IMG/VR virus record: IMGVR_UViG_3300031251_000001
Location: 150,230 to 214,229 of that record
DNA: 64,000 nucleotides
Strand: one strand, 5' to 3'
The notes under the pieces are model-generated. The model was given only the letters and a program-made list of their open reading frames with translations. It was not told the origin of the DNA and did not search any database. Position numbers and translations under genes: made by a program. Position 1 is the first letter of the stretch; every line of letters starts with the position of its first letter. Shown here one piece after another: positions 21,936 to 63,663 of the stretch.

Positions 21936-21951
21936 CAAAATACGTATTTTG
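21936..21951. promoter_or_regulatory. 16-bp palindrome, copy 3
   Basis: Exact, intergenic. Confidence 0.85.
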
Positions 21952-32084: not shown

Positions 32085-32150
32085 CGTTGTGCCGCCGAGT
32101 ACCCACCAGGAGCACCCTAAGCAGCGGTAGGCCTACCGGTGGCCCCGTGA
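32085..32150 (-). ncRNA. 66-nt structured scaffold element, copy A
   Basis: TCACGGGGCCACCGGTAGGCCTACCGCTGCTTAGGGTGCTCCTGGTGGGTACTCGGCGGCACAACG. Confidence 0.8.
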
Positions 32151-32421
32151 ACTGACTACTTGCTCTGGATGTTACAGCGGGCATCCCAGAACAGCAAGAT
32201 GACGATGGTGACGACCAGGCCAATGATGCCGGCCGTGCCCCAGTAATAGTCGAAGCTGGAGTCAAACCAGATCGCTGTCATGCAGAGCATGCAGGCTAGC
32301 ATGGAGAGCGTGAACGCTGCGTATTTGGCTGGTGGATCTGAAGGAATTGGCTTGTTAAAAGCATCGCCCAGCAACCTGCGTAGCTGGGCGTCCTTGTCGA
32401 AGTGAGGCATCGATAGCTCCG

Positions 32422-32874
32422 TCATGCGGTATTATTTTCGGGTGCGAGCCCCAGCGGAACGAAAGAGTGATCGTCAGGCGGCGGTGCAGCAACAGGGGCT
32501 GGTGCCGGCGGCTTGACGGGGGCTGCGGGTTGATTACTGAGTTTGAGTGGTGGGGTAGTCGATTGGCCTGATCGTCGGCTACCCAGGATGCCGATGCCGA
32601 CAGCTCCACCCATCGCTGCGGCCGGGCCAAAGAGCTTGAGCCCCCGCGAGAGAAGACCAGCCGTCTTGCCCAGTCCCATGCCGGTGTTGAGCAAGGCCCT
32701 GCGAAGCTGCCAGCCGGTGTAGAGTTGCTCCACGACGTCGGTGGCTTCCTTCTTCTCTTCGCCTACCTTGTCGGGCAGGGTGATGTCCTTGGGTGTGTGT
32801 TCCTGCCATCGCTTAGCCATCTCGGGCTTCTGAGAATACATCCATCTGCGCTGGGCCTTCGACTTAAACGGCAT
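32422..32874 (-). CDS. conserved phage protein
   Basis: N-terminal MPFKSKAQRRWMY...AKRWQEHTP...LPDKV motif; Gly/Pro-rich tail. Confidence 0.65.
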   Translation of the reverse strand: MPFKSKAQRRWMYSQKPEMAKRWQEHTPKDITLPDKVGEEKKEATDVVEQLYTGWQLRRALLNTGMGLGKTAGLLSRGLKLFGPAAAMGGAVGIGILGSRRSGQSTTPPLKLSNQPAAPVKPPAPAPVAAPPPDDHSFVPLGLAPENNTA

Positions 32875-32996
32875 GACATATCTCCATTTGACCCGGTACG
32901 CTTATCCTAACCCCGGCTCGTGTTGCTTAGCCATATCTAGGTCCCCCGGTGCGGCAATTCCTTCCTTCCGGATCCAATGCAAGCCCGGCGGCGATG
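32875..32996 (-). repeat. irregular CCGG(G) array B
   Basis: CCGG at 32893, 32913, 32946, 32968, 32985; spacing irregular. Confidence 0.3.
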
Positions 32997-33062
32997 CGTT
33001 GTGCCGGCGAGCGTCCACCAGGGACGCCCTAACCAGCTGTGGGCCTACCGGTGGCCCCGTGA
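32997..33062 (-). ncRNA. 66-nt scaffold element, copy B
   Basis: TCACGGGGCCACCGGTAGGCCCACAGCTGGTTAGGGCGTCCCTGGTGGACGCTCGCCGGCACAACG. Confidence 0.8.
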
Positions 33063-33466
33063 CTTCAGTCTAACAAACGGGCGGCTGCCCATGCGGTGCT
33101 GAATGAAGAATCATGTCCTCCAGTCGGAGGTTGACGTCGTCGAGGTAGACCGGGCTAAAGCGGATGCGAGCTTCCTCTTTGGTGCCGTAGCTCGACTGGA
33201 CAGGCGGGTGCTGAGAGAGTTGCTGCTCCTGAACTCGCACCCAAGGCAAACCTCGCAGCTCATCGGGGAGCTTCTCGTAGTAAAGCCGGGAAGACCACTT
33301 CACCGGCGTCAACCACACTAGCTTGCCGTTCTCCTTCGACTCAAAGGTGGCGCCCTCGTAGACCATAAAGGTGCCACTTCGGAAGGCCATGATGGCGGTC
33401 ACCGGTCCCACGCCACATCTGATCTCGGTGGCCAACCGCATGGTGGCCACCGTACGACGGTGCGGG

Positions 33467-34270
33467 TTAAGCGAGATCGCCTTGGTCCTGGTCGGAAGGA
33501 ACAGGCCCGTGATCATTGCTACCAGGCTCCCCAGCAGGCTTCGGCGGTTCGACATGAGTTGCTCTCTTTTCCAAGTCAGCCAGCACGGGAGTGGCGACAG
33601 GGTTATGGGTCTTGTTCAATCTTAACTTAGACAAGGCAGCGCTGAGGTTGGAGGTGCCCTTCTCCTGGAGGCGACGAGCCATCACCTCTTCGCTGCCGGC
33701 ATTGGGGGTGACGGTGGTTTTCTCCTGGCGAATGACTTTCACCCGTGCTCGACTCTGATCATTATCGGCTTCTTTCAGGATCTCGCCAAACGCTTCATGC
33801 GTTGCTTGCTCCTCAAAGACACTCTGTTCCTTGGCGTCCTTACGACGCTGCACACTGACAGGTCCATTCAGGGTGTAGTCGAGAAGCTCGTGACTGTGGC
33901 ATCCCTGGGTGTACTCCCCTTTAGGGAGTGGGTGATCTTTACCTGTGATCTTCAGGGTGCGGAACTGGTTCTCCATCCGCGTCATCGCTGCCCTGACGTG
34001 CTCCTTAAACTCGGCAAAGGTGCCGACAAAGGCGTTGATGTGCACATCCGTCTCATTGGTCACGATGGCCACCGGTTCCTCGCCGGCAGGCACTGCAGGA
34101 AGATCAGCGACCGGTGTGATAGACGGCACCTTCACGGTAGGCAGATAAAGCGGAATGCCGGGACCGTCACCCACCCCGCAGGTAATCCCGAAGTAGAAGA
34201 TGTGCTTGATTGGACCCTTGGGTGGCTTCACCTCGCTGAATATCTCTGGATGCTCGAAGTGATTGCTCAT
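33467..34270 (-). CDS. hypothetical protein
   Basis: GGGGAG RBS, 267 aa. Confidence 0.6.
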   Translation of the reverse strand: MSNHFEHPEIFSEVKPPKGPIKHIFYFGITCGVGDGPGIPLYLPTVKVPSITPVADLPAVPAGEEPVAIVTNETDVHINAFVGTFAEFKEHVRAAMTRMENQFRTLKITGKDHPLPKGEYTQGCHSHELLDYTLNGPVSVQRRKDAKEQSVFEEQATHEAFGEILKEADNDQSRARVKVIRQEKTTVTPNAGSEEVMARRLQEKGTSNLSAALSKLRLNKTHNPVATPVLADLEKRATHVEPPKPAGEPGSNDHGPVPSDQDQGDLA

Positions 34271-35550
34271 ACTTACTCCCCTGGTTACTGGTATCTCTCG
34301 GCCCGCTCCCGACTCATCACGTAAAGCGACTCGCTCTGCTCGGTGGCACTGACTACCACCGTAAAGCTGCAGTCCTTGACGAAGCCCGAGCTGTTGAGCA
34401 GCCCTGGCCCTTTTGTATCCACTGCGTCATGGTCTGTATAGTCGATTATCTCGACGCCGTTACAGACCATGTGCGGAGAGCAGGGGGCAGCTGAGCCGTG
34501 GTGATTCCAGGTGCTGGCGTTCTGGAAGCGGATCAGGGTGCGGTTATGATCCGACAGCACCAGCATTTCTTTAGCTACGATGCTGTACGACTGACGATTG
34601 GGCAGGTTGAGCCAGGCGCGTGGGTTCGACATCGTGAGAGCGATGTTGAGATAGTTATGCCTCTTGCCGTCCTTGCTCACGTTAGCCTTGAAGGCCCCGA
34701 TGATGACCAAGAAGATCGCTACGAAGCACATGGCGAAGAACCAGAGGATGCTGACAGCGTCCATGCTTACCCCTTGAGATGGAAGACCTTGATCAACTCC
34801 TGTCGCAGTTCTGGGTTGGCCTCCAGCACCTGGAGAGTAGTCTCCTGATCGGCAACAAGCAACTCCAACAAGGTGGTAGCCCACTTGACGACATACTCCT
34901 GCTTTGACATCAGCAGGTTGTCGAACTCGGTCGCACAGATGCCACACTGGCTGCGGTGGTCGCAGGTGGCCTTTCCACCCCCGACGAACTTGAGACCGAC
35001 GTCGGAGGGGGCCGGAGTTGACCAACTGACCGGTTGCTTAAACTGTTCAACCACCTGAACCGCCTCATTCTTGCGAGCACGACAAGGCGACTTCATCTCC
35101 GCCGGGACAATGAAATCACCACAGCGCTTGCACCTGACGCACTGACCCTGGCCTGGCGGGTGCGACACAGTACACCGCTCCATGCCCGGTTCGTGCGGTA
35201 AATTGAAAGGATGTGGTTCGCTGACGCCGAGTTCAGATTTGATTTCTTTACACTCCCATGTTTTCTTGTTCGAGTTGTAGTTGTACCAGTGCTCATGCAC
35301 CGATGCCGGCTCGTCGAAGGTGAAGAGGAGCGACACCTCTTTGGGATCCTCGATGTCGAGGTGGAAAGTAGCGGAATGAGCATGGATGCCGTGGGAGACG
35401 GCAGCGTCCACGTTAATAAATGATGACGTGGAGGAATGGTCCGTAACCCTAGACAGGGTACGCACGGTGACTCGTACCTTCTTGGTGTCGGGCCAGATCG
35501 GAAAATGGAAGAAGTAACGGCTGAGTGGCATGGTGGCTCCTGTGGAGGTG

Positions 35551-35889
35551 TTACTTATGATCTTTGACCAGCTGTTCACACTGCTGGGCATAGGTCTTGC
35601 CAATGAACTGCTGCTGGCGTAGAAATCCGAGCTTGGCTCTCGATGTCATCTTCTCCCAGAGCCGGGCTATCATGGGCCTGATCTTATCCAGGCCGACGCC
35701 AGATCGGAAGCGGAAACGACCCTCGGACAGGTCCCCCGTCTCCTCCATGACTCCACCAAGCTCTTCGGGCAGCTGATCACCACCGTCACAATCGATGTCA
35801 GAGTACATATTGACGATGCGTTCAGCGGTGAACTTGCTAGGTACGTTATTAACCCCTTGTGAGGGGTAAGGCGAGGCGTAGATAGGCAT
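35551..35889 (-). CDS. hypothetical protein
   Basis: Start MPIYASPY after AGGAG. Confidence 0.6.
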   Translation of the reverse strand: MPIYASPYPSQGVNNVPSKFTAERIVNMYSDIDCDGGDQLPEELGGVMEETGDLSEGRFRFRSGVGLDKIRPMIARLWEKMTSRAKLGFLRQQQFIGKTYAQQCEQLVKDHK

Positions 35890-35903
35890 GCTTGCTCCTG
35901 GTT

Positions 35904-35919
35904 CAAAATACGTATTTTG
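35904..35919. promoter_or_regulatory. 16-bp palindrome, copy 5
   Basis: Exact; directly at the end of array C. Confidence 0.85.
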
Positions 35920-36079
35920 GGTTCGTGTCTCCGCCCCTGCTTCGTGCTGGTGGACTCCACCTGCTGTGACAAGCCCGACTTGACTCCCTGCTACGAGGTA
36001 GCCAGATCGGCTCACCTGTTGCGAGCATTGGCATCTCCGCCCCTGCCCGTGCGGGAAGAGCATCAACACCCTGCTCGCT
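35920..36079 (-). CRISPR. putative minimal-repeat array C ((RG)CAGG x6)
   Basis: Plus-strand cctg at 36070, 36042, 36015, 35987, 35960, 35936 (periods 28, 27, 28, 27, 24). Confidence 0.6.
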
Positions 36080-36145
36080 CGTTGTGCCAGCGACCCGCCA
36101 CCAGGGCGAACCTAACCAGCTGTAGGCCTAGCAGAGGCCCCGTGA
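36080..36145 (-). ncRNA. 66-nt scaffold element, copy C
   Basis: TCACGGGGCCTCTGCTAGGCCTACAGCTGGTTAGGTTCGCCCTGGTGGCGGGTCGCTGGCACAACG. Confidence 0.8.
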
Positions 36146-36150
36146 ATCGA

Positions 36151-36627
36151 TCAATGACTCGGTGTACGATGCTTCAGCTCAGCCCAGACGTTAGCCGGGG
36201 TCCAGTGGCTCTGTTCCCCTGTCTGATCGAGCGTAGCAATCAACTCGTCCAAGTCGTACCAGGCCCAGCCGTCGCACTTGTCCGGCTCCTTGTTGACCGG
36301 CTCTCCGCCGATGTACTCGGCATACACCCAGTAGGTGATGTGGTTGACTCGCGGTCGATGATCGCTGACGCCCAGGATAGCAGGACAAAACTCAATGTCC
36401 AGATCAGTGCAGACCTGGAGGCCTGTCTCTTCGAGGACCTCACGGTGAACAGCATCCATGATGGTCTCACCATTCTCGACATGCCCACCCGGCAGAGCGA
36501 TGCAGCCTGGTCCGCGTTTGCACGTCATGGAGCGACGGCCGGCCAGGAACTTGCCCTCTTTGTGAATCAAGATGCCCACCCCGGAAGTGGGTGGGCGACC
36601 AAGCAGAACGGTCTTCTCGTCGGTCAT
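36151..36627 (-). CDS. Nudix hydrolase (NUDT15/MutT-like)
   Basis: Nudix box GGHVENGETIMDAVHREVLEETGL; EPVNKEPDKCDGWAW. Confidence 0.92.
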   Translation of the reverse strand: MTDEKTVLLGRPPTSGVGILIHKEGKFLAGRRSMTCKRGPGCIALPGGHVENGETIMDAVHREVLEETGLQVCTDLDIEFCPAILGVSDHRPRVNHITYWVYAEYIGGEPVNKEPDKCDGWAWYDLDELIATLDQTGEQSHWTPANVWAELKHRTPSH

Positions 36628-37390
36628 TTTGGCTCCGGTCGGTGTAGCAGCGTGCCTTTCGGCAGCTTGGCTTTGGCGTACCACCAGCAGTTAGCGCAGG
36701 TGTTGCTGGCACGCTGAGGTTCTTTGGTAATGGGTTCGTCGATTCGCTTGGCCCCGCAGTAGGCTTTGGTGGTGTTGCCAGCGGGGAGCACATGGTAGAG
36801 GTGAGTGCGGAAGAAGCTGATGTCGGGGTTGTCGTATTCGACGGTGAAGCGACTGCGACGCTTGCACCGGCTGCATCGCCGGGGCTCACCACGAGGGCGG
36901 TTCATCGTGGCACCGCAGCTCTGACACTTCCATCGGGTCATGCTACCGCCCTCAAGTGTTTCTCGATTTGAGGCTGGAACACCTTGAAGTCGGTGTACTT
37001 GCCATCTGCGGTGAGTTGGCTGGCGGTCTCCCAGGCAGCCACCATGTCCACCTCACCGATGGTCGGGTATCGTGGCAGGCGATCACGGCCATGCCACGGC
37101 GTCCACGAACCAGAGAGCCGATGATGAACGATCTCCGGGATCGTGTAGATGAACAAGGCGGCGGGGTTACCAGTGCATTCGAGTTGATGGTTGAATGCAC
37201 CCGGTGCACCGCGATCTCGACCGCAAGCAGGATAGTAACCCTGCCAGAAGCCCTTGATCAGCAAGTAGAACGGCAGGTCACCCTTGGGTACGTCCAGCTG
37301 GGCGATGCGGAACTTCCTGGCTCGTATCTGCTTGTCGATCTCGGCACGCAGGCTTTCTGACGCCTGATAGAGCTGAAGCATGACCACTCC

Positions 37391-37933
37391 TTAGTCGCAG
37401 TTATTGTAAGTCAGCACGGCATCCCGATTCTTCCCGTTGACCTTCACATTGAGTTTGATCCAGGCCTCAGAATGATAGCCATCAGTGACCTTGATAGGCA
37501 GCTTATTGCGATCGAACACCTCTTGCATCGCTTCTTTGTCCAGTCGCGTGTCACACAGGCAAGGAGTCAAAGTATCCTGGTCGCGGGAGGAAAGGAAGTC
37601 CAGGCTGAAGGCGTAACCCTTCATGTACTCCTGGCTGCAGCTGATGCCGTTGGTCTGGTTGTGGTGCTCTGGGCCGTCGTCGTCTTCAATGATCACCGTA
37701 GGTCCCTTGGCGAAGTTGACCTTCCAGCTGGGTGTGGCACTGAAGTCGATGGGTGAGTCGTCTTTGACCTGACCGGTGGCGTGATTCACCAGCTCCCGGT
37801 CGATGATCGTCATCCACCGGTCGACGATCTCGTCTTTGGTGTCATCATCGACGCTTTCCCAGACGCCTCTACGGTCATCCAGGTCTTCCCTGATCTTGGC
37901 TGCGATTGACTGAGCTACATCGGAATAGGACAC
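37391..37933 (-). CDS. hypothetical acidic protein
   Basis: GAGGAG RBS, GTG start. Confidence 0.55.
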   Translation of the reverse strand: MSYSDVAQSIAAKIREDLDDRRGVWESVDDDTKDEIVDRWMTIIDRELVNHATGQVKDDSPIDFSATPSWKVNFAKGPTVIIEDDDGPEHHNQTNGISCSQEYMKGYAFSLDFLSSRDQDTLTPCLCDTRLDKEAMQEVFDRNKLPIKVTDGYHSEAWIKLNVKVNGKNRDAVLTYNNCD

Positions 37934-39907: not shown

Positions 39908-41641
39908 TTATTCCTCGGGTTGATCAGCTGCGTCCCTCTTCTCCTTGAGGATCTTCACCATCGCCTCCAGCTGCGACAGTGTATCGGCGTCACGGTCGGC
40001 CGTCCGCAGCATGCGCTTAGTGAGAGCACGTTTAGCGTAAAGCACCGTCACCGGCAGACGAGCCATAGCCTGGCCCACCGCTGCTGGACCACGAGAACGG
40101 AAGATGTCGTGGAACTTCTCGTAGAACTCCATGCTGTGCACATGCGTCCCGGTGTCAGCGTTGTCGTGACAGTGCTCATGGGCCAGCAGATGGACCAGGC
40201 TGCTGACGCCATCGACGTCGAACTGGAGCCTTCTCAGGTAGTCCCGGCCGATAGCAATGTAGCTCTCGCCGTCCGTCCAGCCCTCGGCCACCGGGGAGCG
40301 ACCGATGCAGAGCTTACGTCGCTTCTCCCAGCTGTTGCGTTCGCGTTTGATGATCAACCAGTAGGCAACATGAGCCAGCTTGAGCCAGATCCCCTCCAGG
40401 GCGGTGAGGTTCTTCTCGGCGATCAAGTCATAGCTCTCGCTGATCGACTTGATCAGCGACTGGAGACTACAGATCTTGTAGCTGGAACCCAGGTTCATCC
40501 TGTACGATTCCTTCCCTGTCCTGATCTTCCACATGACATCAAGGAACTTACTCAACGACATGTTGAACTTGCGCAGGGTCTCCTCGGCCACCACGAACGC
40601 CAGCTTCTGCTGAAACAGCTTATCAGCCCTGCGGTCACCCAGCGGAGCACTGGTGAGGCGTTCTTTGTACTGGTAGGAACATTGAAAGAACTGCTTGATG
40701 GAATAGTGACGACCTGAGCAAGCGGTGATGATCTTGAGATCAACAGCACCCGCCGGCACCTCATCCTGAGCGATCAAGTCGATGAGGCGTTGGCGTTCGT
40801 CATCGTTCATCGACTCCCTCTTGAGGAGTTCCTTCTGGGCGATCTGGTCGACGAACGGTTTGATCTTCCGCCACACCTTGCAGGACGATTGGACGTCGTT
40901 CCTGGCGAAGTTCACCTCCAGCTGCTGACGGCTGACGATGACGCCGCCTACGCCGAAGTGAGAGCCGGCCATGTCCAGTGTGTGCACGCCCAGGTTGTAA
41001 AGAGCCAGGGTGCCGGCACCACGGGTCAGGCGGATGTAGGCCTCATCGGTGACGAAGTCCCACTTTTCTTTAGCGGGGTCGACGTTGATCTTGGTGCCGT
41101 TGTAGACAACAACACACTGGGCGTACTTGGCCCAGCTGCGGATCAACCGCTCAGTCTCGGCAAAGTCCGAGGGCTTCATCCGCTCGTAGAGCTTGATCTC
41201 GATGCGGCAGCCATCCTTCTCAGGCAGGCCACTCTTGAGGTCGTAGTCCAGACCATCGTCGGCGATGTTGACGTTCATCTCGAATGGGCCGGTACGCCAG
41301 CGGTTGCGACCATAGGAGAACATCTGCCCACGGCCCATGCGGAAGGTGCCGTAGATCTTCTTCTCTTTCTCGGTGTGGGGCTGACCGAAGGTCTCAAAGA
41401 AGTCCTCGATCTGCTTGCGTTCGGCGATGCCGATACCGTTGTCGTCGATGAGGACGCTCTCAGGGGTGACGGTGATGGAGCACTTGGTGGCTTTGGCGTC
41501 CACCGAGTTCATGACCCCTTCGAGCACGGCCTTGGCCAGAGTGCCGGCCTGCCGCTTGATAACGTCCAGGAGGAGCTTCGGGTGCATCCCGAAGCGACGG
41601 CGCTCGATGTTGTCGGTACGTGCGAGTGCGGAAACGGACAT
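39908..41641 (-). CDS. GHKL (HATPase_c/Hsp90-like) ATPase protein
   Basis: EGVMNSVDA, IDDNGIG, YGTFRMGRG, GCRIEI; HEHCH near the C-terminus. Confidence 0.85.
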   Translation of the reverse strand: MSVSALARTDNIERRRFGMHPKLLLDVIKRQAGTLAKAVLEGVMNSVDAKATKCSITVTPESVLIDDNGIGIAERKQIEDFFETFGQPHTEKEKKIYGTFRMGRGQMFSYGRNRWRTGPFEMNVNIADDGLDYDLKSGLPEKDGCRIEIKLYERMKPSDFAETERLIRSWAKYAQCVVVYNGTKINVDPAKEKWDFVTDEAYIRLTRGAGTLALYNLGVHTLDMAGSHFGVGGVIVSRQQLEVNFARNDVQSSCKVWRKIKPFVDQIAQKELLKRESMNDDERQRLIDLIAQDEVPAGAVDLKIITACSGRHYSIKQFFQCSYQYKERLTSAPLGDRRADKLFQQKLAFVVAEETLRKFNMSLSKFLDVMWKIRTGKESYRMNLGSSYKICSLQSLIKSISESYDLIAEKNLTALEGIWLKLAHVAYWLIIKRERNSWEKRRKLCIGRSPVAEGWTDGESYIAIGRDYLRRLQFDVDGVSSLVHLLAHEHCHDNADTGTHVHSMEFYEKFHDIFRSRGPAAVGQAMARLPVTVLYAKRALTKRMLRTADRDADTLSQLEAMVKILKEKRDAADQPEE

Positions 41642-42000
41642 GCGTTTGAATCCTTGTCTGGTTACCAGGGTGAGTTAGAAGGTGAGGTCGTTGAGGTGGC
41701 GGAGAGCGATCTTGGCCCAGGCGTCAGTCAACCTTTGCCGGTCAAGTTCCGAAACGTGCATGGTGTCGACATGAGGGCCATCCACCAAGTCTTGCACGAT
41801 GTCTCGCCCGATCTGCTGGGCTGCCAGCTGCAGGTCGGTGTTGATGACCGCTGCCACCTTAGCGGTGAGTGGGGTAGATTTGGGTGGATCGAGCTTCTGG
41901 ATGATGTTCTTGGACAATTGCTCAACGATAGAGGCATCATCGTGTTTGACCTCGACATCGTAATCCCTGACTTTGAATCTGACCGTGATCATGGTGGCTC

Positions 42001-51931: not shown

Positions 51932-52435
51932 TCACTCCCCTAGTTGTTCCAGTGAGTAGCCCAGGCCGCAGTAGAGCACCACGTCACCGCAGCGCTCGAG
52001 GACGCCCTCGGGGCCATGGATCTTGCCCGTCTTCTCCGACTCGCGGAGGAAGTCGATGTGCTTGTAGGCGTAGAGGCGGCAGAGCAGGATCGGGCACTCG
52101 CCGAAGTCCCGCCCGATACGGAGGAAATTGCCCAGGAACATGTGTTCCGAGGAGTAGCCCTGGCCCTTGCCGAACATGCACAGCTCAACGTAGTTGTAGA
52201 GCTCGGTGGGTTTGATGCCCTTGCGGATGGCGTACTCAGCAGCGTTGGCAGCCACCGACCACCAATGCCACGGGCCTTGCGGGCGAGTGAGTGGGTTACA
52301 ATCCCGCAGTAGCTGGAGATCAGTTCGTTCATCTCGCAAACTGTTGTGGATAAGCTCACTAGCCACATTGCCGACGAGCCGTCCGTGTACCTCGTACCTG
52401 ATGAGCTCCATCAGGGCTTTTCTGTCCTTGACCAT
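51932..52435 (-). CDS. hypothetical protein
   Basis: Start MVKDRK after AAGGA. Confidence 0.6.
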   Translation of the reverse strand: MVKDRKALMELIRYEVHGRLVGNVASELIHNSLRDERTDLQLLRDCNPLTRPQGPWHWWSVAANAAEYAIRKGIKPTELYNYVELCMFGKGQGYSSEHMFLGNFLRIGRDFGECPILLCRLYAYKHIDFLRESEKTGKIHGPEGVLERCGDVVLYCGLGYSLEQLGE

Positions 52436-52439
52436 GTGT

Positions 52440-52530
52440 GTTTCCTTCGGGGCTACGGTGTCCTGACTCGTTGATGTGCGACGAGCCTTACCTGACTCGC
52501 CGCTATTGGGAACGAACTCCCTGACAGATG
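52440..52530 (-). CRISPR. putative minimal-repeat array D (CGAGTCAGG, 29-nt period)
   Basis: Plus-strand cctgac at 52462, 52491, 52520; 20-nt spacers. Confidence 0.65.
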
Positions 52531-52596
52531 CGTTGTGCCGGCGACCACCCACCAGGAGTGCCCTGACCGGCTGTAGGCGTGTCAGACGCCCCGTGA
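52531..52596 (-). ncRNA. 66-nt scaffold element, copy D
   Basis: TCACGGGGCGTCTGACACGCCTACAGCCGGTCAGGGCACTCCTGGTGGGTGGTCGCCGGCACAACG. Confidence 0.8.
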
Positions 52597-52601
52597 ACGG
52601 A

Positions 52602-52913
52602 TTACTTGCCGTGGATCTTAGCTTCATTCATGCGAATGATCTCGTCGACGGTCATGGCACTGCGCTTGACGTTGCATTCAGCACAGGCCCAGACGAGGTT
52701 CTCACGTTCGTTGGTGCCGCCCAGGCTCAGTGGAAGGATATGTTCCACGGTTCGGCAATCGGGCGGCTGGGGGTTGGTGTTGGGCGGGTAGACCACCATG
52801 ACTTTGTCACACCAGAAGCAGAGGTCGGACTGAGGTCCTTGCTCCAGCATTTTCCGGCGTGCCTTCTGGCGTCTACCCGACTCGTTGCGCTTCCGTCTCC
52901 TCGGTGCGATCAT
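52602..52913 (-). CDS. small HNH endonuclease
   Basis: CFWC...TVEHILPLSLGGTNERENLVWACAECNVKR. Confidence 0.9.
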   Translation of the reverse strand: MIAPRRRKRNESGRRQKARRKMLEQGPQSDLCFWCDKVMVVYPPNTNPQPPDCRTVEHILPLSLGGTNERENLVWACAECNVKRSAMTVDEIIRMNEAKIHGK

Positions 52914-52938
52914 GCTTGCTTTCCGGGCGGGAGGGTTC

Positions 52939-52954
52939 CAAAATACGTATTTTG
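52939..52954. promoter_or_regulatory. 16-bp palindrome, copy 6
   Basis: Exact, intergenic. Confidence 0.85.
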
Positions 52955-53754: not shown

Positions 53755-54270
53755 TTAATTCTGGGATGCAGTGAGGATCTCGCTACAGATCTGATCGATC
53801 ACCGACACCAGGGGACTGGGAGCGATGATGTCAACTTCCACGAAGATCCCATCACCAGCATCGCCTTCCTTGAGCATGCTGAGGCCGATCGTATCCAATC
53901 GCTTCGTGAACGTCCTCCAGTGTTCTCTGGGTATCTTCACTTCAACCCTGGCTAGGTCATATTCGGCCTTGACGTGCTTGAGCGGCTTCGATGCTGCCGA
54001 CTTGGATTCGATGATCGTACCAGGCGCGATTGTCAGTTTGTTACCTGTGGCCTCCGTTGCTTTGGCGAATCTGGCCATGAGATCCTTGTCGTCCATACCG
54101 GCAATGATGGTGATGGTGTGGAGTTCCCCTTGGATGCCTTGACCCCTTGCGTCAGCGTGGGGACTGAACATCTTGAAATTGCCACGTTGCATAGTGTCAC
54201 AGTCTTCACGGGTTAGACCGATGAACACCATGTAACCTTTGGCCCCGTCATCAGCGTACGCTTTAAGCAT
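53755..54270 (-). CDS. hypothetical protein
   Basis: AAGGAG RBS. Confidence 0.6.
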   Translation of the reverse strand: MLKAYADDGAKGYMVFIGLTREDCDTMQRGNFKMFSPHADARGQGIQGELHTITIIAGMDDKDLMARFAKATEATGNKLTIAPGTIIESKSAASKPLKHVKAEYDLARVEVKIPREHWRTFTKRLDTIGLSMLKEGDAGDGIFVEVDIIAPSPLVSVIDQICSEILTASQN

Positions 54271-54286
54271 GTCTTTCTCCTTGGTG

Positions 54287-54323
54287 AAAACGAAAAGGCC
54301 CGCACCAGTGAGGATGCGGGCCT
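54287..54323 (-). terminator. intrinsic terminator
   Basis: AGGCCCGCA-loop-TGCGGGCCT followed by TTTCGTTTT. Confidence 0.8.
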
Positions 54324-54344
54324 GTTAGCTCTCTTCTTTAACTA

Positions 54345-57161: not shown

Positions 57162-57167
57162 AGTGGT

Positions 57168-57176
57168 AATGTACCA
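57168..57176 (-). promoter_or_regulatory. extended -10 TGGTACATT, 6 nt before ATG (possibly leaderless)
   Basis: No SD sequence; spacing to ATG at 57161. Confidence 0.5.
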
Positions 57177-57200
57177 CAGACGCTGGGGTTGGTGGTGGGA

Positions 57201-57512
57201 TCAAAGCGAAGGCAGGCAAGCGTGGGCGACGTCGGAGGTGAAGAGCTCTCCTGGGCCGTTGCCTTCGGTGTCACGAGAAGCGTAGAGATGGACGTCGTTG
57301 TCGAGGATGATGACCAGAGGACGATTATCCCAGCGCATGTCGGTTGCCTCCTTCTTGGTCATGTACCTGACGTGCTTGATGGTGCGATCACGCAGGAGAT
57401 CAGTAGCAACAGCGGTCCAGTAGGTTTCACGCTGCTTAGCGTTGGAGAGGTCGTATTGCTTTCTGTGGTGAGTAACGATGGATGGCATGAGGTTGTTCCT
57501 GAGAGTTGACAT
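57201..57512 (-). CDS. hypothetical protein
   Basis: ASRDTEGNGPGELF motif; follows array E. Confidence 0.6.
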   Translation of the reverse strand: MSTLRNNLMPSIVTHHRKQYDLSNAKQRETYWTAVATDLLRDRTIKHVRYMTKKEATDMRWDNRPLVIILDNDVHLYASRDTEGNGPGELFTSDVAHACLPSL

Positions 57513-57642
57513 ACTGGTATTGCGTGCCCGTCACGACAGATCTGGCAAGGTGCCCGTCCGGAGGACGATACGGTACATGCCCGCCCTTGAAAGGTCGGGG
57601 CATGGACCCGTCCTCGGAGTGACGGCCAATACCGTCCCTGTT
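57513..57642 (-). CRISPR. putative minimal-repeat array E (GRCGGGCA, 26-27-nt period)
   Basis: Plus-strand cccg at 57527, 57553, 57580, 57607 and cctg at 57637. Confidence 0.6.
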
Positions 57643-57708
57643 CGTTGTGCCGACGCGTGCCCACCAGGAGCACGCTAATCAGCTGTAGGCCTGACGGAGG
57701 CCCCGTGT
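57643..57708 (-). ncRNA. 66-nt scaffold element, copy E
   Basis: ACACGGGGCCTCCGTCAGGCCTACAGCTGATTAGCGTGCTCCTGGTGGGCACGCGTCGGCACAACG. Confidence 0.8.
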
Positions 57709-58529
57709 GCTTGATTGTTAGAACCTTGGTCTAGGCAGTTCCTTTGATTCTTCCACAGTCGGCTCAGGTGTGGGTTGGTGCCGGGCCTCCAGGGCGGAAA
57801 TGCGACTTGATAGCGACTCATTCACGATCGCTTGCTCGGAGATCTTGTTCTCGATGCGGATGTGTTGAATGGTGTGAATGACCAGGTAACCCATGGCGAA
57901 CCAGAAGATGAAATCAAACATGTGTTCCTTAGTTGATACTGGGTTTACCTGCCACACGGCGTAACACCGTGGTCAGGGCCTCATTGGTGATGTCGGCTCG
58001 GTCGGGGTCAGTCACCTCGCGGCAACCATCCTCGACGATAACGATGTCATGCTCGCAATGGTCAGCGAGGAAGCGAAAGATCGGGGCAGTCTCGCCGCCA
58101 TCGCCCATGACCGAGAACTCGGCCCCGCTGATGTGCAGCAAGTAGGCCAGAGAATCCGACTCAGCCAGTACCCGACGCAGGAACTCTTCGCTCACGCGAC
58201 TGGACTGGGGCGAGTCGAGATTGCAGGTCTTGCAGCGGTAACTCATGTCGACAGACATAGTGACTCCTCACAGTTCGCCACGTGATTGCAACAGTTTGAT
58301 CATGGCGGGATGAATCCAGAACACCTTGTTGCATTGGCAGGTGATGGCGATCCGTGTACCTACGGGCAAATGGGCCAACTCGTCGTTGCCGCCACGATCA
58401 GTCTCCGCCTTGTCGATGGTAGTCATGCGGTGATCTGCCGTGCTGAGCGTACGACATAGGGAGTGCCACTGACTGCGGACATAGCCCATGAACTTGGTGT
58501 TCGATAGTGTTTCTTTCATCGAGTCTCCT

Positions 58530-58612
58530 TAATTAGCCTGTTCGCCATTTCCCATCCAGCAATCCGGTCAACTGGTCCCATCCGGATTCAGGTTATGCCA
58601 CTCCCACCCGAT
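58530..58612 (-). CRISPR. putative minimal-repeat array G (GGRTGGGA, 26-nt period)
   Basis: Plus-strand ccca at 58551, 58577, 58603; 18-nt spacers. Confidence 0.65.
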
Positions 58613-58678
58613 CGTTGTGTCAACGCCAATCCACCAGGGATGAGCTCATTGACGGTAGGCGTGATGGACGCCCCGTAG
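58613..58678 (-). ncRNA. 66-nt scaffold element, copy G
   Basis: CTACGGGGCGTCCATCACGCCTACCGTCAATGAGCTCATCCCTGGTGGATTGGCGTTGACACAACG. Confidence 0.8.
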
Positions 58679-58738
58679 CCGTGAGGCCTCATGCGGTGTA
58701 AGCTGATCGCAGGCAATAATGCCACCAGAGGACCTCGC

Positions 58739-60325
58739 ATGCTAGATCAGAAACGAGTTGTGCTACCAGGTAGCGACCGCAAACCCTTAGAGGGTGCCAC
58801 GGTTGCAGCCGGCCACCGTCATAGTGAAAGGTTTGAGGTCACCGTGCGTCTGCGACGCAAGGCACCAATCAAACCCGAAGGAGCCCAACACGAGGATGTC
58901 CTTCCCGCTGATCGCAAGTATATGACCTGTGATCAGTATCTTGCACAGCATGGTGCCAAGCAGGAAGATGTTGATTTGGTGACAGCGTTTGCCAAGTTGT
59001 ACGGTCTGACGGTAGTCGATGTCAGCCTGGCACGCCGTAGTGTGTTCTTGTCGGGTTGTACCGAGCAGTTTGAGAAGGCCTTCAGTACCACGATCGCTGA
59101 CATGGAGCACCCTGGTGGCGGTTATCGCGGCCGAACTGGTCCACTCACAATCCCCGAGAGCCTGTCAGGCATCGTGGAAGCTGTGTTGGGCATCGACAAC
59201 CGCAAGATCGCCAAGCCCCACTTCCAGATGGCTAAGAGGCTGCAGGGTGCGACACCACACGCCAGCCACTCTTCCTACAATCCCAACGATGTCGCCAAGG
59301 CGTACAACTTCCCCACCGGGGTAGATGGTACGGGACAGTGCATTGCCTTGATCGAGCTCGGTGGCGGTTATCGTCTGCCTGACATCACCGCCTACTTCAC
59401 CAAGCTGGGACTGAAGGTGCCCACCGTGAAGACCGTGCGCGTTGATGGCGGCACCAACTCACCGACCACCGCCGATGGCGCTGACGGTGAAGTGATGCTG
59501 GATATCGAAGTAGCGGCAGCAGTGGCACCAGGTGCCACCATTGTCGTCTACTTTGCTCCCAACACCGATAAGGGCTTCCTTGACGCGATCACCATGGCCG
59601 CTCACGACACGGTCAACAAGCCTTCGGTCATCTCCATCAGCTGGGGTGGACCGGAAGCACAGTGGACCGTGCAGGCTCGCGTCGCCATGGATCAGGCGTT
59701 CATCTCAGCCTCCGTGCTGGGTCTGACCATCTGTGTGGCTGGCGGCGACAATGGTTCGACCGATGGCATGACTGACGGCAAGAACCACGTGGACTTCCCC
59801 GGCTCGAGCCCACACGCTCTTTGCTGCGGCGGAACACGACTGGGAATCGGCAGCTCCGGGCAAATCAGCTCGGAATCTGTGTGGAACGATAATCCCACAC
59901 AGAGCGCCACCGGTGGCGGTATCAGTGATGCCTTCAACGTGCCGGTCTATCAGAAGTCCGCTAACATCCCTCCCTCGGCTAATCCCAACAAGAAGTCGGG
60001 ACGCGGATGTCCGGATGTGGCCGGCAATGCTGATCCTTCCTCGGGTTACAACGTCCGCGTGGACGGTGGAAACTATGTGATTGGCGGCACCAGTGCGGTT
60101 GCTCCGCTCTATGCCGGACTGGTAGCACTCTTAAACCAGAAGCTGGGACACCGTTGCGGCTACCTCCACCCGCTGCTGTATGGCAGCGTGCAGGGCAAGG
60201 GAGCCTTCAACGACATCACGTCTGGTAACAACGGTGCTTACCACGCCCAAAAGGGCTGGGATTGCTGCACAGGGCTGGGCACACCCAACGGGCAGGCCCT
60301 CTATATTGCCCTGGGCGGCAAATAG
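58739..60325 (+). CDS. S53 family peptidase (kumamolisin/sedolisin-like) with propeptide
   Basis: Triad motifs GEVMLDIE (ExxxD) and GGTSAVAP, oxyanion GDNG, SISWG, C-terminal GWDCCTGLGTP. Confidence 0.95.
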   Translation: MLDQKRVVLPGSDRKPLEGATVAAGHRHSERFEVTVRLRRKAPIKPEGAQHEDVLPADRKYMTCDQYLAQHGAKQEDVDLVTAFAKLYGLTVVDVSLARRSVFLSGCTEQFEKAFSTTIADMEHPGGGYRGRTGPLTIPESLSGIVEAVLGIDNRKIAKPHFQMAKRLQGATPHASHSSYNPNDVAKAYNFPTGVDGTGQCIALIELGGGYRLPDITAYFTKLGLKVPTVKTVRVDGGTNSPTTADGADGEVMLDIEVAAAVAPGATIVVYFAPNTDKGFLDAITMAAHDTVNKPSVISISWGGPEAQWTVQARVAMDQAFISASVLGLTICVAGGDNGSTDGMTDGKNHVDFPGSSPHALCCGGTRLGIGSSGQISSESVWNDNPTQSATGGGISDAFNVPVYQKSANIPPSANPNKKSGRGCPDVAGNADPSSGYNVRVDGGNYVIGGTSAVAPLYAGLVALLNQKLGHRCGYLHPLLYGSVQGKGAFNDITSGNNGAYHAQKGWDCCTGLGTPNGQALYIALGGK

Positions 60326-60327
60326 TC

Positions 60328-60343
60328 CAAAATACGTATTTTG
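60328..60343. promoter_or_regulatory. 16-bp palindrome, copy 7 (20 bp perfect here)
   Basis: TCCAAAATACGTATTTTGGA between convergent stop codons. Confidence 0.85.
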
Positions 60344-60349
60344 GATGGA

Positions 60350-62200
60350 TTAACTGGAAGCCAAGGCCTTCTCGGGGGCCTTGGCTTTCTTGATGCCTAA
60401 CAGCTTATCTTCCTGATCCTGTAGCTTGGCAAGCTGCTCATTACTTATCTTGAGCAGATTCCTCATCTGTTGATGGATGAGAGTGAAATGACGAGCACCA
60501 CCCGCGACAGGGCAGTCGATGTAGACGTCCTTACCCTTCTTGCCGTCGTAGCGTCTGAGCTTCTCGTGGGCGGCGTGCAGCTTCTTATTGAACTTCTGTG
60601 CCTTAACGACCAAGTTGCGGATCTTGATCACGTTATGCAGATCGTAGAGGGTGGCTGTCTCTTCGCTCAGATCGGTGTAGGCCTTGCCAGTTAAAACACA
60701 GTCATCCTCAAACCAAGAATGCCTGTCGCCTTGATCGATGAGATCGTACCAGATCAGGTAGTGGAAGACCGGGCCTTCCTCTTTGAGGTGGACGATCAGA
60801 TCCATGGGCGTGCCGTTGATGAAAGCAGCCGAATCAGGTTCCTCCTCCCTGGCCCCCAGGTAGAACGGCAAGCGATGCCCATTCCATGTGATGCTGGAAG
60901 CAGCGAGCAGGTAGACGCTGTTACCTGGTGCTGGTTTCCCTGACGGTTCGGTCACTTGGATATCCACCAGCTCTTGAGCCTTCTTGGTGTCAAGAAAGTT
61001 TCTCATGATGGGGTGCTGCGGGCCGGCGTAGAACTCCTCGGTGGTGTCAAGGAACTCCTCCCAGTTAAGCAGCGTGTTGATGAGACCATCATCTACCACT
61101 GACTGGCCACCCTGAACGTAGAGATCCATCTCCTCTTCCCTGGATTTGATACCCTCGTCCTGGACATAGTCAAAGCTGCAGTTCTCGTAGTCCTGGGAAC
61201 TGTAATGCCTCCAACCCAGGCTGCGTACCAGGGCCACGCGATGACGATTGAGCCACTGATCCAACTCCGTCATATCTTTACGTTCGTTATGAGTGAACAG
61301 CTCCGGTAGTGTCGTCATCACGGGTCGCAACCTGGCCACGTAAGCAGACCATCGCGACTTGAAGTAGTGCAATACGTAGTCACGCAGCGCTGTGAGGATC
61401 TGCTGCATGGCTGATTTGAGTTGGGGTGAGTCGATGAGGATGGAACGATCGGGGAGCTTGGGCCGGACACCCGATTCGGGATCGACAAACCAGATGAAGT
61501 TTTTCAGTTCCTCATCGATGGGCAGAGTTTTTGCCTCTTTAAGGTACTCATCTGCCTTACCGCTGCGAAGGTAACGATAGTCCCATACCGGCTCTGGATG
61601 GTTAATGAAGTAAGGACTTGACCTTAAACCCAGCAGCACACGCCCCACCGGCGTCATGAGATCTACCAGGAGATCACCATCCATGCGTTGTGTGATCAGG
61701 TTGCCGTTAAGGGTGAGGGTGAAAGGGTACAGGGCGCGAGCAGTGCTGATGGCGTGGTCCAGCTCCTTCTTCTTGCTGGTGGACAGTATCAGCTTGAGGT
61801 AGAAACCAGGAACGCCTTCTTCCTCAATAGGTTGAATGTCTTTGTCGATCCAGTTCTTGGTGTCAAACTTGACCTTCCAGTTCTTGGAGCGGACAGTCAC
61901 CTCGGTGAACAGATCAGGGTTGAGGAGGCTGAAGAAGCCCATGCCGGCAGGAGAGGTGACCTTGGTGCGATCCCAGCCGGTCTCACCGCCCTCCACGAGT
62001 AGCTGAGGATCTTCACAGCCACGACCGTCGTCCAGGATGGTCAAGACGGTACATTCGGGATCGGTGATGACCGTGACGTTCTTGGCGCCGGCACGGTAGC
62101 AGTTCTGCAGGATCTCAGCCAGGGTGGCATCGAAGCCACCAAAGAAACGAGTCAGCTCAGGCAGGATCGCCTGGCTGACGTGAGCACGAATCGTCTTCAT
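60350..62200 (-). CDS. GHKL (HATPase_c) ATPase protein
   Basis: EILQNCYRAGA, ILDDGRG, AGMGFFSL, GFYLKL. Confidence 0.85.
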   Translation of the reverse strand: MKTIRAHVSQAILPELTRFFGGFDATLAEILQNCYRAGAKNVTVITDPECTVLTILDDGRGCEDPQLLVEGGETGWDRTKVTSPAGMGFFSLLNPDLFTEVTVRSKNWKVKFDTKNWIDKDIQPIEEEGVPGFYLKLILSTSKKKELDHAISTARALYPFTLTLNGNLITQRMDGDLLVDLMTPVGRVLLGLRSSPYFINHPEPVWDYRYLRSGKADEYLKEAKTLPIDEELKNFIWFVDPESGVRPKLPDRSILIDSPQLKSAMQQILTALRDYVLHYFKSRWSAYVARLRPVMTTLPELFTHNERKDMTELDQWLNRHRVALVRSLGWRHYSSQDYENCSFDYVQDEGIKSREEEMDLYVQGGQSVVDDGLINTLLNWEEFLDTTEEFYAGPQHPIMRNFLDTKKAQELVDIQVTEPSGKPAPGNSVYLLAASSITWNGHRLPFYLGAREEEPDSAAFINGTPMDLIVHLKEEGPVFHYLIWYDLIDQGDRHSWFEDDCVLTGKAYTDLSEETATLYDLHNVIKIRNLVVKAQKFNKKLHAAHEKLRRYDGKKGKDVYIDCPVAGGARHFTLIHQQMRNLLKISNEQLAKLQDQEDKLLGIKKAKAPEKALASS

Positions 62201-62233
62201 TCAGTTACTCCCTAGTTCGGTGTACAAGTAGTG

Positions 62234-63529
62234 TTATTCGCCTGCAATTACAGGCTCTTCGACGGCCTTGCCCATGTACAGGAACTCGACCCCGGCCTCA
62301 GTGCAATGGCGCTCAAGTTCCCCCTTGAGCTGGAACCACGGGAAGCGGGGCACGAAGTTCTGGATCGAGTCGTCGTACTTAATGGAAGAGACATCGTTCC
62401 GCAGGGCGAACTGCACGACCTGGCAGCAGGTCTGCAGGATAAAGGTTTTGATACGGTTGTTGTGCTTCCTGGCCCAAAGATCGGCGTCACGCAGGAGACG
62501 CTCCTTCTTGGCCTTGGGGATGCGCATCTCGTGTTTGAGGTCCTGGGACTGGCGGTGCTGCCGGCGTCCGTACTGATAGCACCAGTCACGCACACGGTCA
62601 GCATTAACGACCCAGGGCTCCTCACGGTCCTGGAGGATGCCATAGAGGAGCGACTCCTCAGTAGTGCTGATGTTGAAGAAGCGCTCCTTCTCCAGCTTCT
62701 CCCTGGTCTTGCGTGGGGCATTGACCACGAGCTTGCACATCAGTCGATTGACGGGTCGGGAGGGCTTATTGCCTTGCGGTATATTACTCCTGTGATCACC
62801 CTCGTTGGCTCGCATCTGGTAGAGAGCGATCTCATTGCACTCAGCCTCTCCGTCGAGCACCTGCTGCAGCACTCCGAGCTGACGCCAGTATTGCGACTTA
62901 GAACCTGACAACCGCAGCGTGGTGTGCTCCTTCTGCCCCATCAGACGCATCTTGACACCGAAGGCTTCAGGGAGCTTTTCTTTAGCGGGTAACTTCACCA
63001 GCTTGCTGTCATTGGTGGAGTAAGGCTGCGGGTAGCGGAACGACGGCAGTGATTGCTTGCCGGTCCAGATCACCTCATAGCGGGCAGCGGCATAGATCTT
63101 CTGCACCAGGTTCTCGGCGATGGCCCGCATGGCAGGGTGGATCCGGAAACTAGCCGTCTCCTGGTAGAGATAAGGCCTATCCCAGGTGGGCATTTTCGCC
63201 ATCGTGCCATCACGAACGATGTCACGGAGGAACATCTGGCGGATGAGGAAGTTCTTGAGCCTGGTCGCTTCGGCGAACGAGTCGCGAAGCAAGGGCCGCA
63301 GGTCTTCCCAAGTGATGCCGTCAGGTGCAGTGACCGGGATGGTTATCGCAAAAGTGCGATAATCCCTCTTGTAGCACTTGTTGCAGATGAGCTTATCACC
63401 CTTGAGCTTCCAACCCTTGGGTATTTTAGCAGTGCCGTCTTTGCCCGGCTTGGACTTGCCCTTGTTGACGCAGCCCTCATTGGCGCAATACGTCTCCATC
63501 AGATTCGGTTTGGTTTCGACGATTGACAT
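62234..63529 (-). CDS. Cas12f/TnpB-like protein, predicted nuclease-dead and C-terminally truncated
   Basis: Colinear Cas12f-like blocks: TGKQSLPSFRYPQP, VLQQVLDGE, RFFNISTT (at RuvC-I GIDLG), bridge helix to QVVQFALRNDVSSIKYDD (RuvC-II), FPWFQLKGELERHCTEAGVEF; then stop. AAGGAG RBS. Confidence 0.72.
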   Translation of the reverse strand: MSIVETKPNLMETYCANEGCVNKGKSKPGKDGTAKIPKGWKLKGDKLICNKCYKRDYRTFAITIPVTAPDGITWEDLRPLLRDSFAEATRLKNFLIRQMFLRDIVRDGTMAKMPTWDRPYLYQETASFRIHPAMRAIAENLVQKIYAAARYEVIWTGKQSLPSFRYPQPYSTNDSKLVKLPAKEKLPEAFGVKMRLMGQKEHTTLRLSGSKSQYWRQLGVLQQVLDGEAECNEIALYQMRANEGDHRSNIPQGNKPSRPVNRLMCKLVVNAPRKTREKLEKERFFNISTTEESLLYGILQDREEPWVVNADRVRDWCYQYGRRQHRQSQDLKHEMRIPKAKKERLLRDADLWARKHNNRIKTFILQTCCQVVQFALRNDVSSIKYDDSIQNFVPRFPWFQLKGELERHCTEAGVEFLYMGKAVEEPVIAGE

Positions 63530-63597
63530 AAAAACTCCTTATTGGGAAGCGAAGACTCACCCCATCACGAAGAAAGCCACTGCACTATGCAGCGGCT

Positions 63598-63663
63598 CGT
63601 TGTACCGGCGAGTGTCCACCAGGGACACCCTAACCAGTGGTAGGCGGGATGGACGCCCCTTAG
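63598..63663 (-). ncRNA. 66-nt scaffold element, copy F (directly upstream of the Cas12f-like gene)
   Basis: CTAAGGGGCGTCCATCCCGCCTACCACTGGTTAGGGTGTCCCTGGTGGACACTCGCCGGTACAACG. Confidence 0.8.

Follow-up and report, generated by a model that had tools for sequence, protein, structure and literature searches.

What is the 66-nt element that recurs between genes of an uncultivated 214-kb jumbo phage from a rhizosphere metagenome, and what might it do? We analyzed a 64,000-nt stretch (the window; positions 150,230 to 214,229 of IMG/VR record IMGVR_UViG_3300031251_000001) together with the rest of the 214,229-bp genome. The initial annotation had described seven copies of a covarying structured RNA read from the minus strand, matching no riboswitch or ribozyme known to it. 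All three points were supported by our analysis. However, it missed three further copies, a pseudoknot, and a set of reiterated cognate sites, and it proposed no function.

Covarying fold of the ten copies

All seven copies in the window are 66 nt long and ungapped. The pattern of invariant residues gave 7 matches in the window, as compared with 0.00 in 100 dinucleotide shuffles. The cores are as follows, with the P1 loop of each.

32085..32150, minus strand: copy 1, loop ACCGGUA, 9 nt after the stop codon of an 89-aa ORF (85.4 bits)
32997..33062, minus strand: copy 2, loop ACCGGUA, 11 nt after the stop codon of a 161-aa ORF (89.5 bits)
36080..36145, minus strand: copy 3, loop UCUGCUA, 9 nt after the stop codon of a NUDIX hydrolase gene (81.7 bits)
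52531..52596, minus strand: copy 4, loop UCUGACA, 9 nt after the stop codon of an HNH endonuclease gene (85.4 bits)
57643..57708, minus strand: copy 5, loop UCCGUCA, 13 nt after the stop codon of a 79-aa ORF (90.1 bits)
58613..58678, minus strand: copy 6, loop UCCAUCA, in a divergent gap; the plus-strand S53-peptidase-like gene starts 13 nt away at 58691, so no same-strand gene ends upstream (78.6 bits)
63598..63663, minus strand: copy 7, loop UCCAUCC, with the stop codon of a 90-aa ORF abutting G5 (83.1 bits)

Three more copies lie outside the window, at genome positions 147024, 122621, and 5098, making exactly ten in the whole genome. The ten scored 75-90 bits, while the next-best covariance-model hit scored only 12 bits.

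The invariant blocks and the covariation in P1, P2, and P3 noted in the initial annotation hold. In total, 97.6% of 170 cells pair, 10 of 17 pairs change on both sides, and 0 of 500 shuffles reached this level, while registers slid by 1-3 columns paired in only 33-51% of cells. Nine of the ten copies folded to the consensus on their own. We made two corrections to the stems. P1 has 5 bp (6-10 with 18-22), in which G6-U22 becomes G-C or A-U, and P2 gains an invariant U31-G55 pair, leaving a 2-nt bulge, N32-A33. The core thus consists of hairpin H1 (P1, 5 bp, 7-nt loop) and a bulged hairpin H2 (P2 of 6 bp, a bulge with an invariant A, P3 of 8 bp, and an invariant CUGGU loop), followed by an invariant single-stranded ACAACG tail. 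A strain variant of copy 2 changes C57 to U and keeps the G29-U57 pair. About 40 G-U cells would be A-C mismatches on the other strand, and the minus-sense folds are 3-9 kcal/mol more stable, fixing the strand as the gene-sense RNA.

The dispersed, intergenic copies, often located just after stop codons and preceded by a short semi-conserved (U)UCAC flank, could also suggest a selfish repeat of the REP, MITE, or IS200-derived type, in which the covariation arises from hairpin-templated mutation of the DNA. The absence of the element from related phages would fit this reading. However, all ten copies are in one orientation, the fold is strand-specific, the loop covaries with unique flanking sequence at several sites per locus (see below), and the phage has no Y1 transposase, TnpB, or reverse transcriptase, although a host-encoded enzyme is not excluded. 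We consider this origin very unlikely.

Loop-complementary sites in the spacers

The element does not end at nt 66. P1-loop positions 12-16 pair with a site 4-7 nt after the tail in nine copies and 31 nt after it in the tenth, giving an H-type pseudoknot that encloses H2. Since MAFFT did not place the partner in register, the pairs were counted with our own script. We found that 49 of 50 cells pair and four of the five pairs covary, with position 15 showing G-C, C-G, A-U, U-A, and U-G, and 0 of 10,000 partner shuffles reached this. The ACAAC part of the tail may lie in the groove of the sequence-invariant H1 stem.

Five to seven nucleotides of the H1 loop differ from locus to locus, and the ten loci carry seven different loop "addresses". 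The same locus-specific site recurs 1-8 times, about every 24-30 nt, through the untranslated spacer, before the next start codon or a promoter-like palindrome. The spacers in the window are as follows.

32048..32084, minus strand: spacer of copy 1, with sites at 32073-32077 (pseudoknot partner), 32066-32070, and 32048-32052; the next gene (PAP2 phosphatase) starts at 32003
32893..32996, minus strand: spacer of copy 2, with five sites at 32985-32989 (pseudoknot partner), 32974-32978, 32946-32950, 32913-32917, and 32893-32897, all unchanged in a variant contig that carries 15 inserted bases between them
35931..36079, minus strand: spacer of copy 3, with eight sites, the first at 36071-36075 and the last at 35931-35935; it ends just before a 16-bp palindrome at 35904-35919
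52463..52530, minus strand: spacer of copy 4, with GUCAG sites at 52521-52525, 52492-52496, and 52463-52467, spaced 29 and 29 nt; the next start codon is at 52435
57528..57642, minus strand: spacer of copy 5, with five GACGG or GGCGG sites at 57632, 57608, 57581, 57554, and 57528, spaced 24, 27, 27, and 26 nt; the next start codon is at 57512
58552..58612, minus strand: spacer of copy 6, with sites GGUGG and GAUGG (twice) at 58604, 58578, and 58552, spaced 26 and 26 nt; the next start codon is at 58519
63562..63597, minus strand: spacer of copy 7, with a terminator-like hairpin with a U-run (63576-63593) between the ACAACG tail and the single cognate site GAUGG at 63562-63566

We counted 34 cognate sites in the copies' own spacers, as compared with 0.86 per non-cognate loop-spacer pair, or about 8.6 expected over the ten spacers (permutation p < 5e-5). 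The density is 2.98 per 100 nt in the spacer, against 0.75 for non-cognate loops, 0.40 in the 200 nt upstream, and 0.73 in the next coding sequence, so that the recurrence is confined to the spacer. The sites are not more accessible than other spacer sequence in folds of the spacer alone. A CsrA-sponge role was rejected, since the phage has no CsrA and GGA is not consistently present in the sites.

The sites are followed by G in 24 of 34 cases and preceded by G in 18 of 34, suggesting a defined cleavage context, and the last site lies 15-40 nt before the start codon. These features, the high information content of unpaired positions (CUGGU, ACAAC, A33, and A23-C24), and a pseudoknotted fold, as in the pistol, twister, and HDV ribozymes, raise the possibility of a small self-cleaving ribozyme or the RNA part of a ribonucleoprotein nuclease, with the H1 loop as a short guide that selects the cognate sites. 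Trimming of the spacer would then release an upstream mRNA ending in the knot and a downstream mRNA with a short leader. However, no known ribozyme model in Rfam matched the window at the gathering score or the five copies scanned at E<=10, most conserved structured RNAs are not ribozymes, and, by our reading of the strand order, the topology differs from those of pistol and HDV. In pistol, the partner strand would lie inside the P2/P3 internal loop, while here it lies 3' of the whole second hairpin, and the conserved nucleotides differ. Without biochemical evidence, this reading remains improbable.

Genomic context and the search for homologues

All ten copies are intergenic and on the coding strand, each at the head of an untranslated spacer. 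In 7 of 10, the stop codon lies 0-13 nt before G5, while the distance to the next start codon varies from 68 to 215 nt in the nine typical copies; the diverged copy at 5098 has a much shorter spacer. This copy follows an intrinsic-terminator-like hairpin and copy 6 has no same-strand gene upstream, indicating that the module is not strictly a 3'-UTR feature. In two copies, a promoter-like palindrome separates the spacer from the next gene. We detected no sigma-70-type promoter at the cores or in their spacers, and a sigma-54 or sigma-70 promoter reading of the element was rejected, as the spacing also does not fit. H2 is followed by ACAACG and G-rich sequence, and the terminator scan flagged none of the cores, only the extra hairpin of copy 7. 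With no such promoter and no other U-tract terminator in the spacers, the downstream genes must be reached by read-through.

The flanking genes are functionally unrelated (NUDIX, HNH, PAP2, ThyX, and unknowns), which fits a general mRNA-handling role better than ligand sensing. A riboswitch whose pseudoknot forms or dissolves on ligand binding would account for the conserved junctions, covarying stems, and pseudoknot. Nevertheless, this is very unlikely, given the unrelated downstream genes, the variable distance to the start codon, the absence of a recognizable expression platform, and the lack of an Rfam match over the window at the gathering score or in the five copies scanned at E<=10.

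Rfam 15 gave only tRNA-Met over the whole window at the gathering score, and five of the ten copies scanned at E<=10 gave only unrelated matches on the opposite strand. A megablast search of 12 kb against the phage collection gave no match. A 16-base pattern gave 34 hits in IMG/VR, all chance matches inside coding DNA of G+C-rich phages. A 23-base signature found only the window's own contig in JGI metagenomes and nothing in IMG/VR, and a 20-base signature found nothing in 185,579 prokaryote genomes. Searches for related loci with three single proteins were unsuccessful, but an alignment of RNA polymerase homologues yielded 80 related jumbo-phage loci. The covariance model found nothing convincing in 50 whole records. 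The single 16.8-bit hit, in record G002, lies in coding sequence, and a score of that E-value is expected by chance over 50 genomes. The contigs of the closest ThyX and polymerase relatives gave no hit, and a k-mer survey of G002 and a second record, G001, found no analogous dispersed repeat. The available DNA sequencing runs hold only low-coverage fragments of the same phage. The element is a real, new RNA family known so far from one genome, represented only by paralogues.

Possible roles in phage mRNA

The function is inferred rather than shown, and no transcript data exist. Our preferred, although tentative, interpretation is that the knot acts in cis as intercistronic punctuation of polycistronic phage mRNA, marking where the transcript is cut and/or where exonucleases stall, so that neighboring cistrons get separate fates. 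The reiterated sites would let the single loop re-dock along the ribosome-free spacer. However, one loop can hold only one site at a time, and the need for many sites is explained only by conjecture. The phage encodes no recognizable RNase III or Cas6. The RNase III processing sites of phage T7 (R0.3 to R18.5) are probably comparable, being about ten related structured elements on the coding strand between cistrons, but they appear to lack a pseudoknot and reiterated partner sites, and the 14 bp of H2, with its 2-nt bulge, is shorter than the typical site. In the exoribonuclease-resistant RNAs of plant viruses (PMC11702639), an apical loop also pairs with sequence just downstream, closing a pseudoknotted ring that can act as a mechanical block. 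Those RNAs come from eukaryotic RNA viruses and block Xrn1, show no homology to the present element, and lack the embedded H2 hairpin and the multiple alternative partners.

Alternatively, the core might be cut out as a stable small RNA that accumulates during infection and binds in trans to the cognate sites on newly made spacers of the same locus, causing premature termination or blocking expression of the downstream gene, in a delayed, locus-specific shut-off. This would resemble P4 CI RNA and P1/P7 C4 RNA, structured phage RNAs of about 70-80 nt embedded in an untranslated part of a polycistronic transcript, in which an exposed sequence is complementary to targets in the same transcription unit and regulator and targets co-vary between specificities (PMC4825925; PMC5499578). 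P4 CI RNA is processed from an untranslated transcript and pairs with the flanking seqA and seqC to terminate transcription (PMC4825925), and CI and C4 are hairpin-like RNase P substrates (PMC5499578). The locus-specific complementarity within one transcription unit agrees with this model, several sites per spacer make sense if many processed RNAs bind at once, and eight of the ten copies cluster in about 37 kb of small unknown genes, if the contig ends are joined. On the other hand, the complementarity is only 5-7 nt, the first site is so close that an intramolecular pseudoknot should win, the cognate sites lie downstream and do not recur upstream, and no Rfam family, including any C4 model it holds, matched the five copies scanned at E<=10. 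Ten orthogonal circuits for unrelated genes are also hard to rationalize, and we regard this model as unlikely.

The element might instead control elongation by the phage's own multisubunit RNA polymerase, either as a put-like RNA that binds the polymerase and carries it through the ribosome-free spacer (anti-pausing, anti-Rho, or antitermination), or as a pseudoknot-dependent pause or termination signal that re-forms as each site emerges. The phage encodes a fused beta/beta' polymerase subunit, the sites are confined to the untranslated spacer, where the polymerase has no trailing ribosome, the spacers are richer in G than in C, which is unfavorable for Rho, and a terminator-like hairpin directly follows the core of copy 7. 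HK022 put is probably comparable as a cis-acting, two-hairpin RNA of about 70 nt, although it appears to lack a pseudoknot and partner sites, to occur twice per genome just after promoters and ahead of terminators, and to act on host RNA polymerase. However, only one of ten copies is followed by such a hairpin, no U-tracts follow the sites, the 50 relatives with homologous polymerases lack the element, and the downstream genes would have no promoter if it terminated efficiently. This role is therefore doubtful.

Phage intercistronic RNA signals are known mainly from a few model phages, such as the T7 RNase III sites, P4 CI, and P1 C4, and almost nothing is known for the large uncultivated jumbo-phage groups that carry their own multisubunit RNA polymerase. 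The module described here, although known from only one metagenomic genome and without expression data, combines an invariant scaffold with a short locus-specific loop whose complement is reiterated only in the ribosome-free spacer. The structure is very well supported, and we found no described precedent for this layout. If the loop-site pairing controls processing, decay, or elongation, then it would be a compact modular way to give each cistron of a long operon its own fate. More speculatively, and with low probability, the invariant scaffold (H2, the ACAACG tail, and the H1 stem) would be a new small ribozyme or the RNA subunit of a phage or host nuclease, with the 5-7-nt H1 loop directing cleavage, or another RNA-level action, at every cognate site in the spacer. 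Each of the ten loci would then carry its own guide-target code, and the module would be a naturally programmable RNA-targeting device.

Covariation, fold and strand of the element

The seven copies reported in the initial annotation were recovered at exactly the positions assigned there, all on the minus strand, 66 nt long and without gaps. The pattern of invariant residues matches seven times in the window, whereas none of 100 dinucleotide-preserving shuffles gave any match. On the ten-copy alignment, the helices proposed in the initial annotation hold: 97.6% of 170 cells form standard pairs, and 10 of 17 pairs change on both sides. No shuffle out of 500 reaches the observed values, and registers slid by one to three columns pair only 33-51%. 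All of this covariation comes from paralogues. RNAalifold added two pairs, G6-U22, which becomes G-C in one copy and A-U in another, and U31-G55, which is invariant. The fold therefore comprises the following parts, in element positions:

6-10 with 18-22: P1, closing a 7-nt loop
26-31 with 55-60: P2
32-33: bulge N32-A33
34-41 with 47-54: P3, closing the loop CUGGU
3' end: tail ACAACG

About 40 cells are G-U pairs, which would be A-C mismatches on the other strand. Nine of ten copies fold to the consensus on their own in the minus sense, and those folds are 3-9 kcal/mol more stable than the plus-sense folds. The structure therefore belongs to the gene-sense RNA.

No Rfam 15 family matches, either at gathering score over the whole window or at E<=10 over five of the ten copies. 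The full signature occurs only in the window's own contig among 241 million metagenome records, and it is absent from IMG/VR and from 185,579 prokaryote genomes. Fifty related jumbo-phage records have no credible hit; the single 16.8-bit match lies inside a coding region, and a hit of that E-value is expected by chance over 50 genomes. This is a new RNA family, known from one metagenome-assembled genome. The phage has no recognisable RNase III or Cas6. A guide-directed ribozyme or ribonucleoprotein nuclease remains an improbable reading. The phage also has no Y1 transposase, TnpB or reverse transcriptase, and a selfish DNA repeat appears very unlikely.

Genomic context and copy number

The window forms the last 64 kb of a 214,229-bp IMG/VR virus record rated 100% complete, whose contig, Ga0265327_10000075, is from a rhizosphere metagenome. 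By our own codon-usage gene calls, which are heuristic, about 95% of the genes lie on the minus strand, and nearly all genes around the elements have no family match. Outside the window, a 1674-aa ORF (genome G000:C1:102635-107659, where G000 denotes the whole phage genome; locus L051:2635-7659 in a stretch extracted from it, minus strand) joins RNA polymerase beta (Rpb2_6) and beta' (Rpb1_2) domains. Hundreds of metagenomic homologues sit on contigs of about 170-235 kb, and the nearest cultivated relatives (Salmonella phage Arash and some Vibrio phages) are only about 30% identical. Control of elongation by this phage polymerase is a conceivable but unlikely role for the element.

A covariance model built from the alignment finds exactly ten copies in the genome, scoring 75-90 bits, while the next hit scores 12 bits. 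The three copies outside the window are at genome positions 147024, 122621 and 5098. All ten copies are intergenic and on the coding strand. In seven copies, the stop codon of the upstream gene lies 0-13 nt before G5, and the next start codon lies 68-215 nt after the tail in the nine typical copies; the diverged copy at 5098 has a much shorter spacer. Three copies depart from this arrangement. Copy 6 (58613) lies in a divergent gap, 13 nt from the start of a plus-strand S53-peptidase-like gene, the copy at 147024 lies about 90 nt after its upstream gene, and the diverged copy at 5098 follows an intrinsic-terminator-like hairpin. This hairpin is one of two upstream of that copy (genome G000:C1:5160-5290), and, by eye, a sigma-70-like TTGTCA / extended -10 TAAGAT pair also overlaps them, so that the intergenic region looks regulatory and complex.

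The flanking genes are unrelated in function, namely NUDIX, HNH endonuclease, PAP2 phosphatase, ThyX and unknowns, and a riboswitch appears highly unlikely. The phage itself has no CsrA, although a contig whose thyX is a 45%-identical homologue carries a CsrA homologue directly downstream of thyX (locus L145:1934-2128 in the stretch extracted around it). Genes of note in the window are as follows:

36151-36684 (-): NUDIX hydrolase with a weak Nudt16-like (RNA-decapping-type) match, immediately upstream of copy 3
52602-52913 (-): small HNH endonuclease, immediately upstream of copy 4
39908-41641 (-) and 60350-62200 (-): two large HATPase_c_3 proteins
58691-60325 (+): one of the few plus-strand genes, S53 (sedolisin)-like with a pro-kumamolisin activation domain; its start codon lies 13 nt from the complement of element copy 6
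28423-28495 (-): a single tRNA-Met (CAU) gene

Two other short repeats were noted. A perfect 16-bp AT-rich palindrome, CAAAATACGTATTTTG, recurs 22 times in the whole genome in intergenic gaps, including window positions 8244-8259, 14990-15005, 21936-21951, 30447-30462, 35904-35919, 52939-52954 and 60328-60343. It usually lies just after a stop codon and 8-25 nt before the next ribosome-binding site, sometimes right after a terminator-like hairpin, and one occurrence sits at the 3' end of the S53-like gene, where this gene converges with the 616-aa gene. The palindrome is probably the phage polymerase's promoter or an operator, and a related phage, G001, has an analogous palindrome, TCTAAAAAACGTTTTTTAGA, 18 times. 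The 12-mer GATCGCGGCCGA occurs 7 times in the gene sense of the whole genome (for example at 611, 36245, 43991 and 92908) and never on the other strand, which is unexplained.

Pseudoknot and reiterated cognate sites

We further identified a pseudoknot that had not been noted in the initial annotation. Positions 12-16 of the P1 loop are complementary to a stretch that starts 4-7 nt after ACAACG, or, in copy 7 (63598), 31 nt after the tail, beyond an inserted hairpin. The complementarity covers 49 of 50 cells, and the pairs vary among copies: position 13 is C-G or U-A; position 14 is G-C or A-U; position 15 is G-C, C-G, A-U, U-A or U-G; and position 16 is U-A, U-G or C-G. No shuffle of partner strands among copies, out of 10,000, reaches this. 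The inserted hairpin of copy 7 (window 63576-63593, minus strand) is terminator-like with a U-run and lies between the ACAACG tail and the only cognate site of this copy, whose pseudoknot can therefore form only in read-through transcripts.

The resulting arrangement is an H-type pseudoknot in which stem 1 is P1 and stem 2 is the loop-site helix. One-nucleotide connectors flank the loop strand, namely position 11, often U opposite G, and A17, usually opposite G, and the third loop carries the whole P2/P3 hairpin and the ACAACG tail. The P1 stem is almost invariant in sequence, and the tail is an invariant A/C-rich strand. By inference only, the tail might lie in the groove of P1, as the third loop does in many H-type pseudoknots.

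The 5-nt complement of each copy's loop also recurs in that copy's own spacer, which is likewise a new observation. There are 34 such sites in all, against 0.86 per non-cognate loop-spacer combination, or about 8.6 expected over the ten spacers (permutation p < 5e-5). The spacing is fairly regular, as represented by the following sites in element positions:

Copy 5 (57643, -): 73, 97, 124, 151 and 177
Copy 4 (52531, -): 72, 101 and 130
Copy 6 (58613, -): 71, 97 and 123

The sequence between the sites is not conserved within a spacer, while the sites themselves tend to be preceded by G (18 of 34) and followed by G (24 of 34). The enrichment is confined to the untranslated spacer.

Table. Density of loop-complementary sites by region (cognate sites per 100 nt)
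Own spacer, cognate loop: 2.98
Same spacers, non-cognate loops: 0.75
200 nt upstream of the element: 0.40
First 300 nt of the next coding sequence: 0.73

In a low-coverage strain variant of copy 2 (32997), eight substitutions and 15 inserted bases leave all five sites untouched, and the only change inside the core turns G29-C57 into G29-U57, which is weak support but consistent. The address-coded layout of loop and reiterated sites has no precedent that we could find. A P4 CI or P1 C4-like co-transcribed antisense regulator, acting in trans on the same locus, is possible but unlikely.

Possible role in polycistronic phage RNA

The element is a strand-specific folded RNA with a pseudoknot, its loop is matched to sites in the ribosome-free spacer, and it occurs between unrelated genes. 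The spacers contain no sigma-70-type promoters and, apart from copy 7, no U-tract terminators. The downstream genes must therefore be reached by read-through, so the module sits inside polycistronic RNA. In two copies, the 16-bp AT-rich palindrome separates the spacer from the next gene. Without transcript ends or biochemistry to decide among the possible readings, the function is inferred, and we only tentatively favor a role in intercistronic punctuation. In this view, the knot would define a processing point and/or a barrier to exonucleases, and the reiterated sites would allow the single loop to re-dock along the naked spacer.
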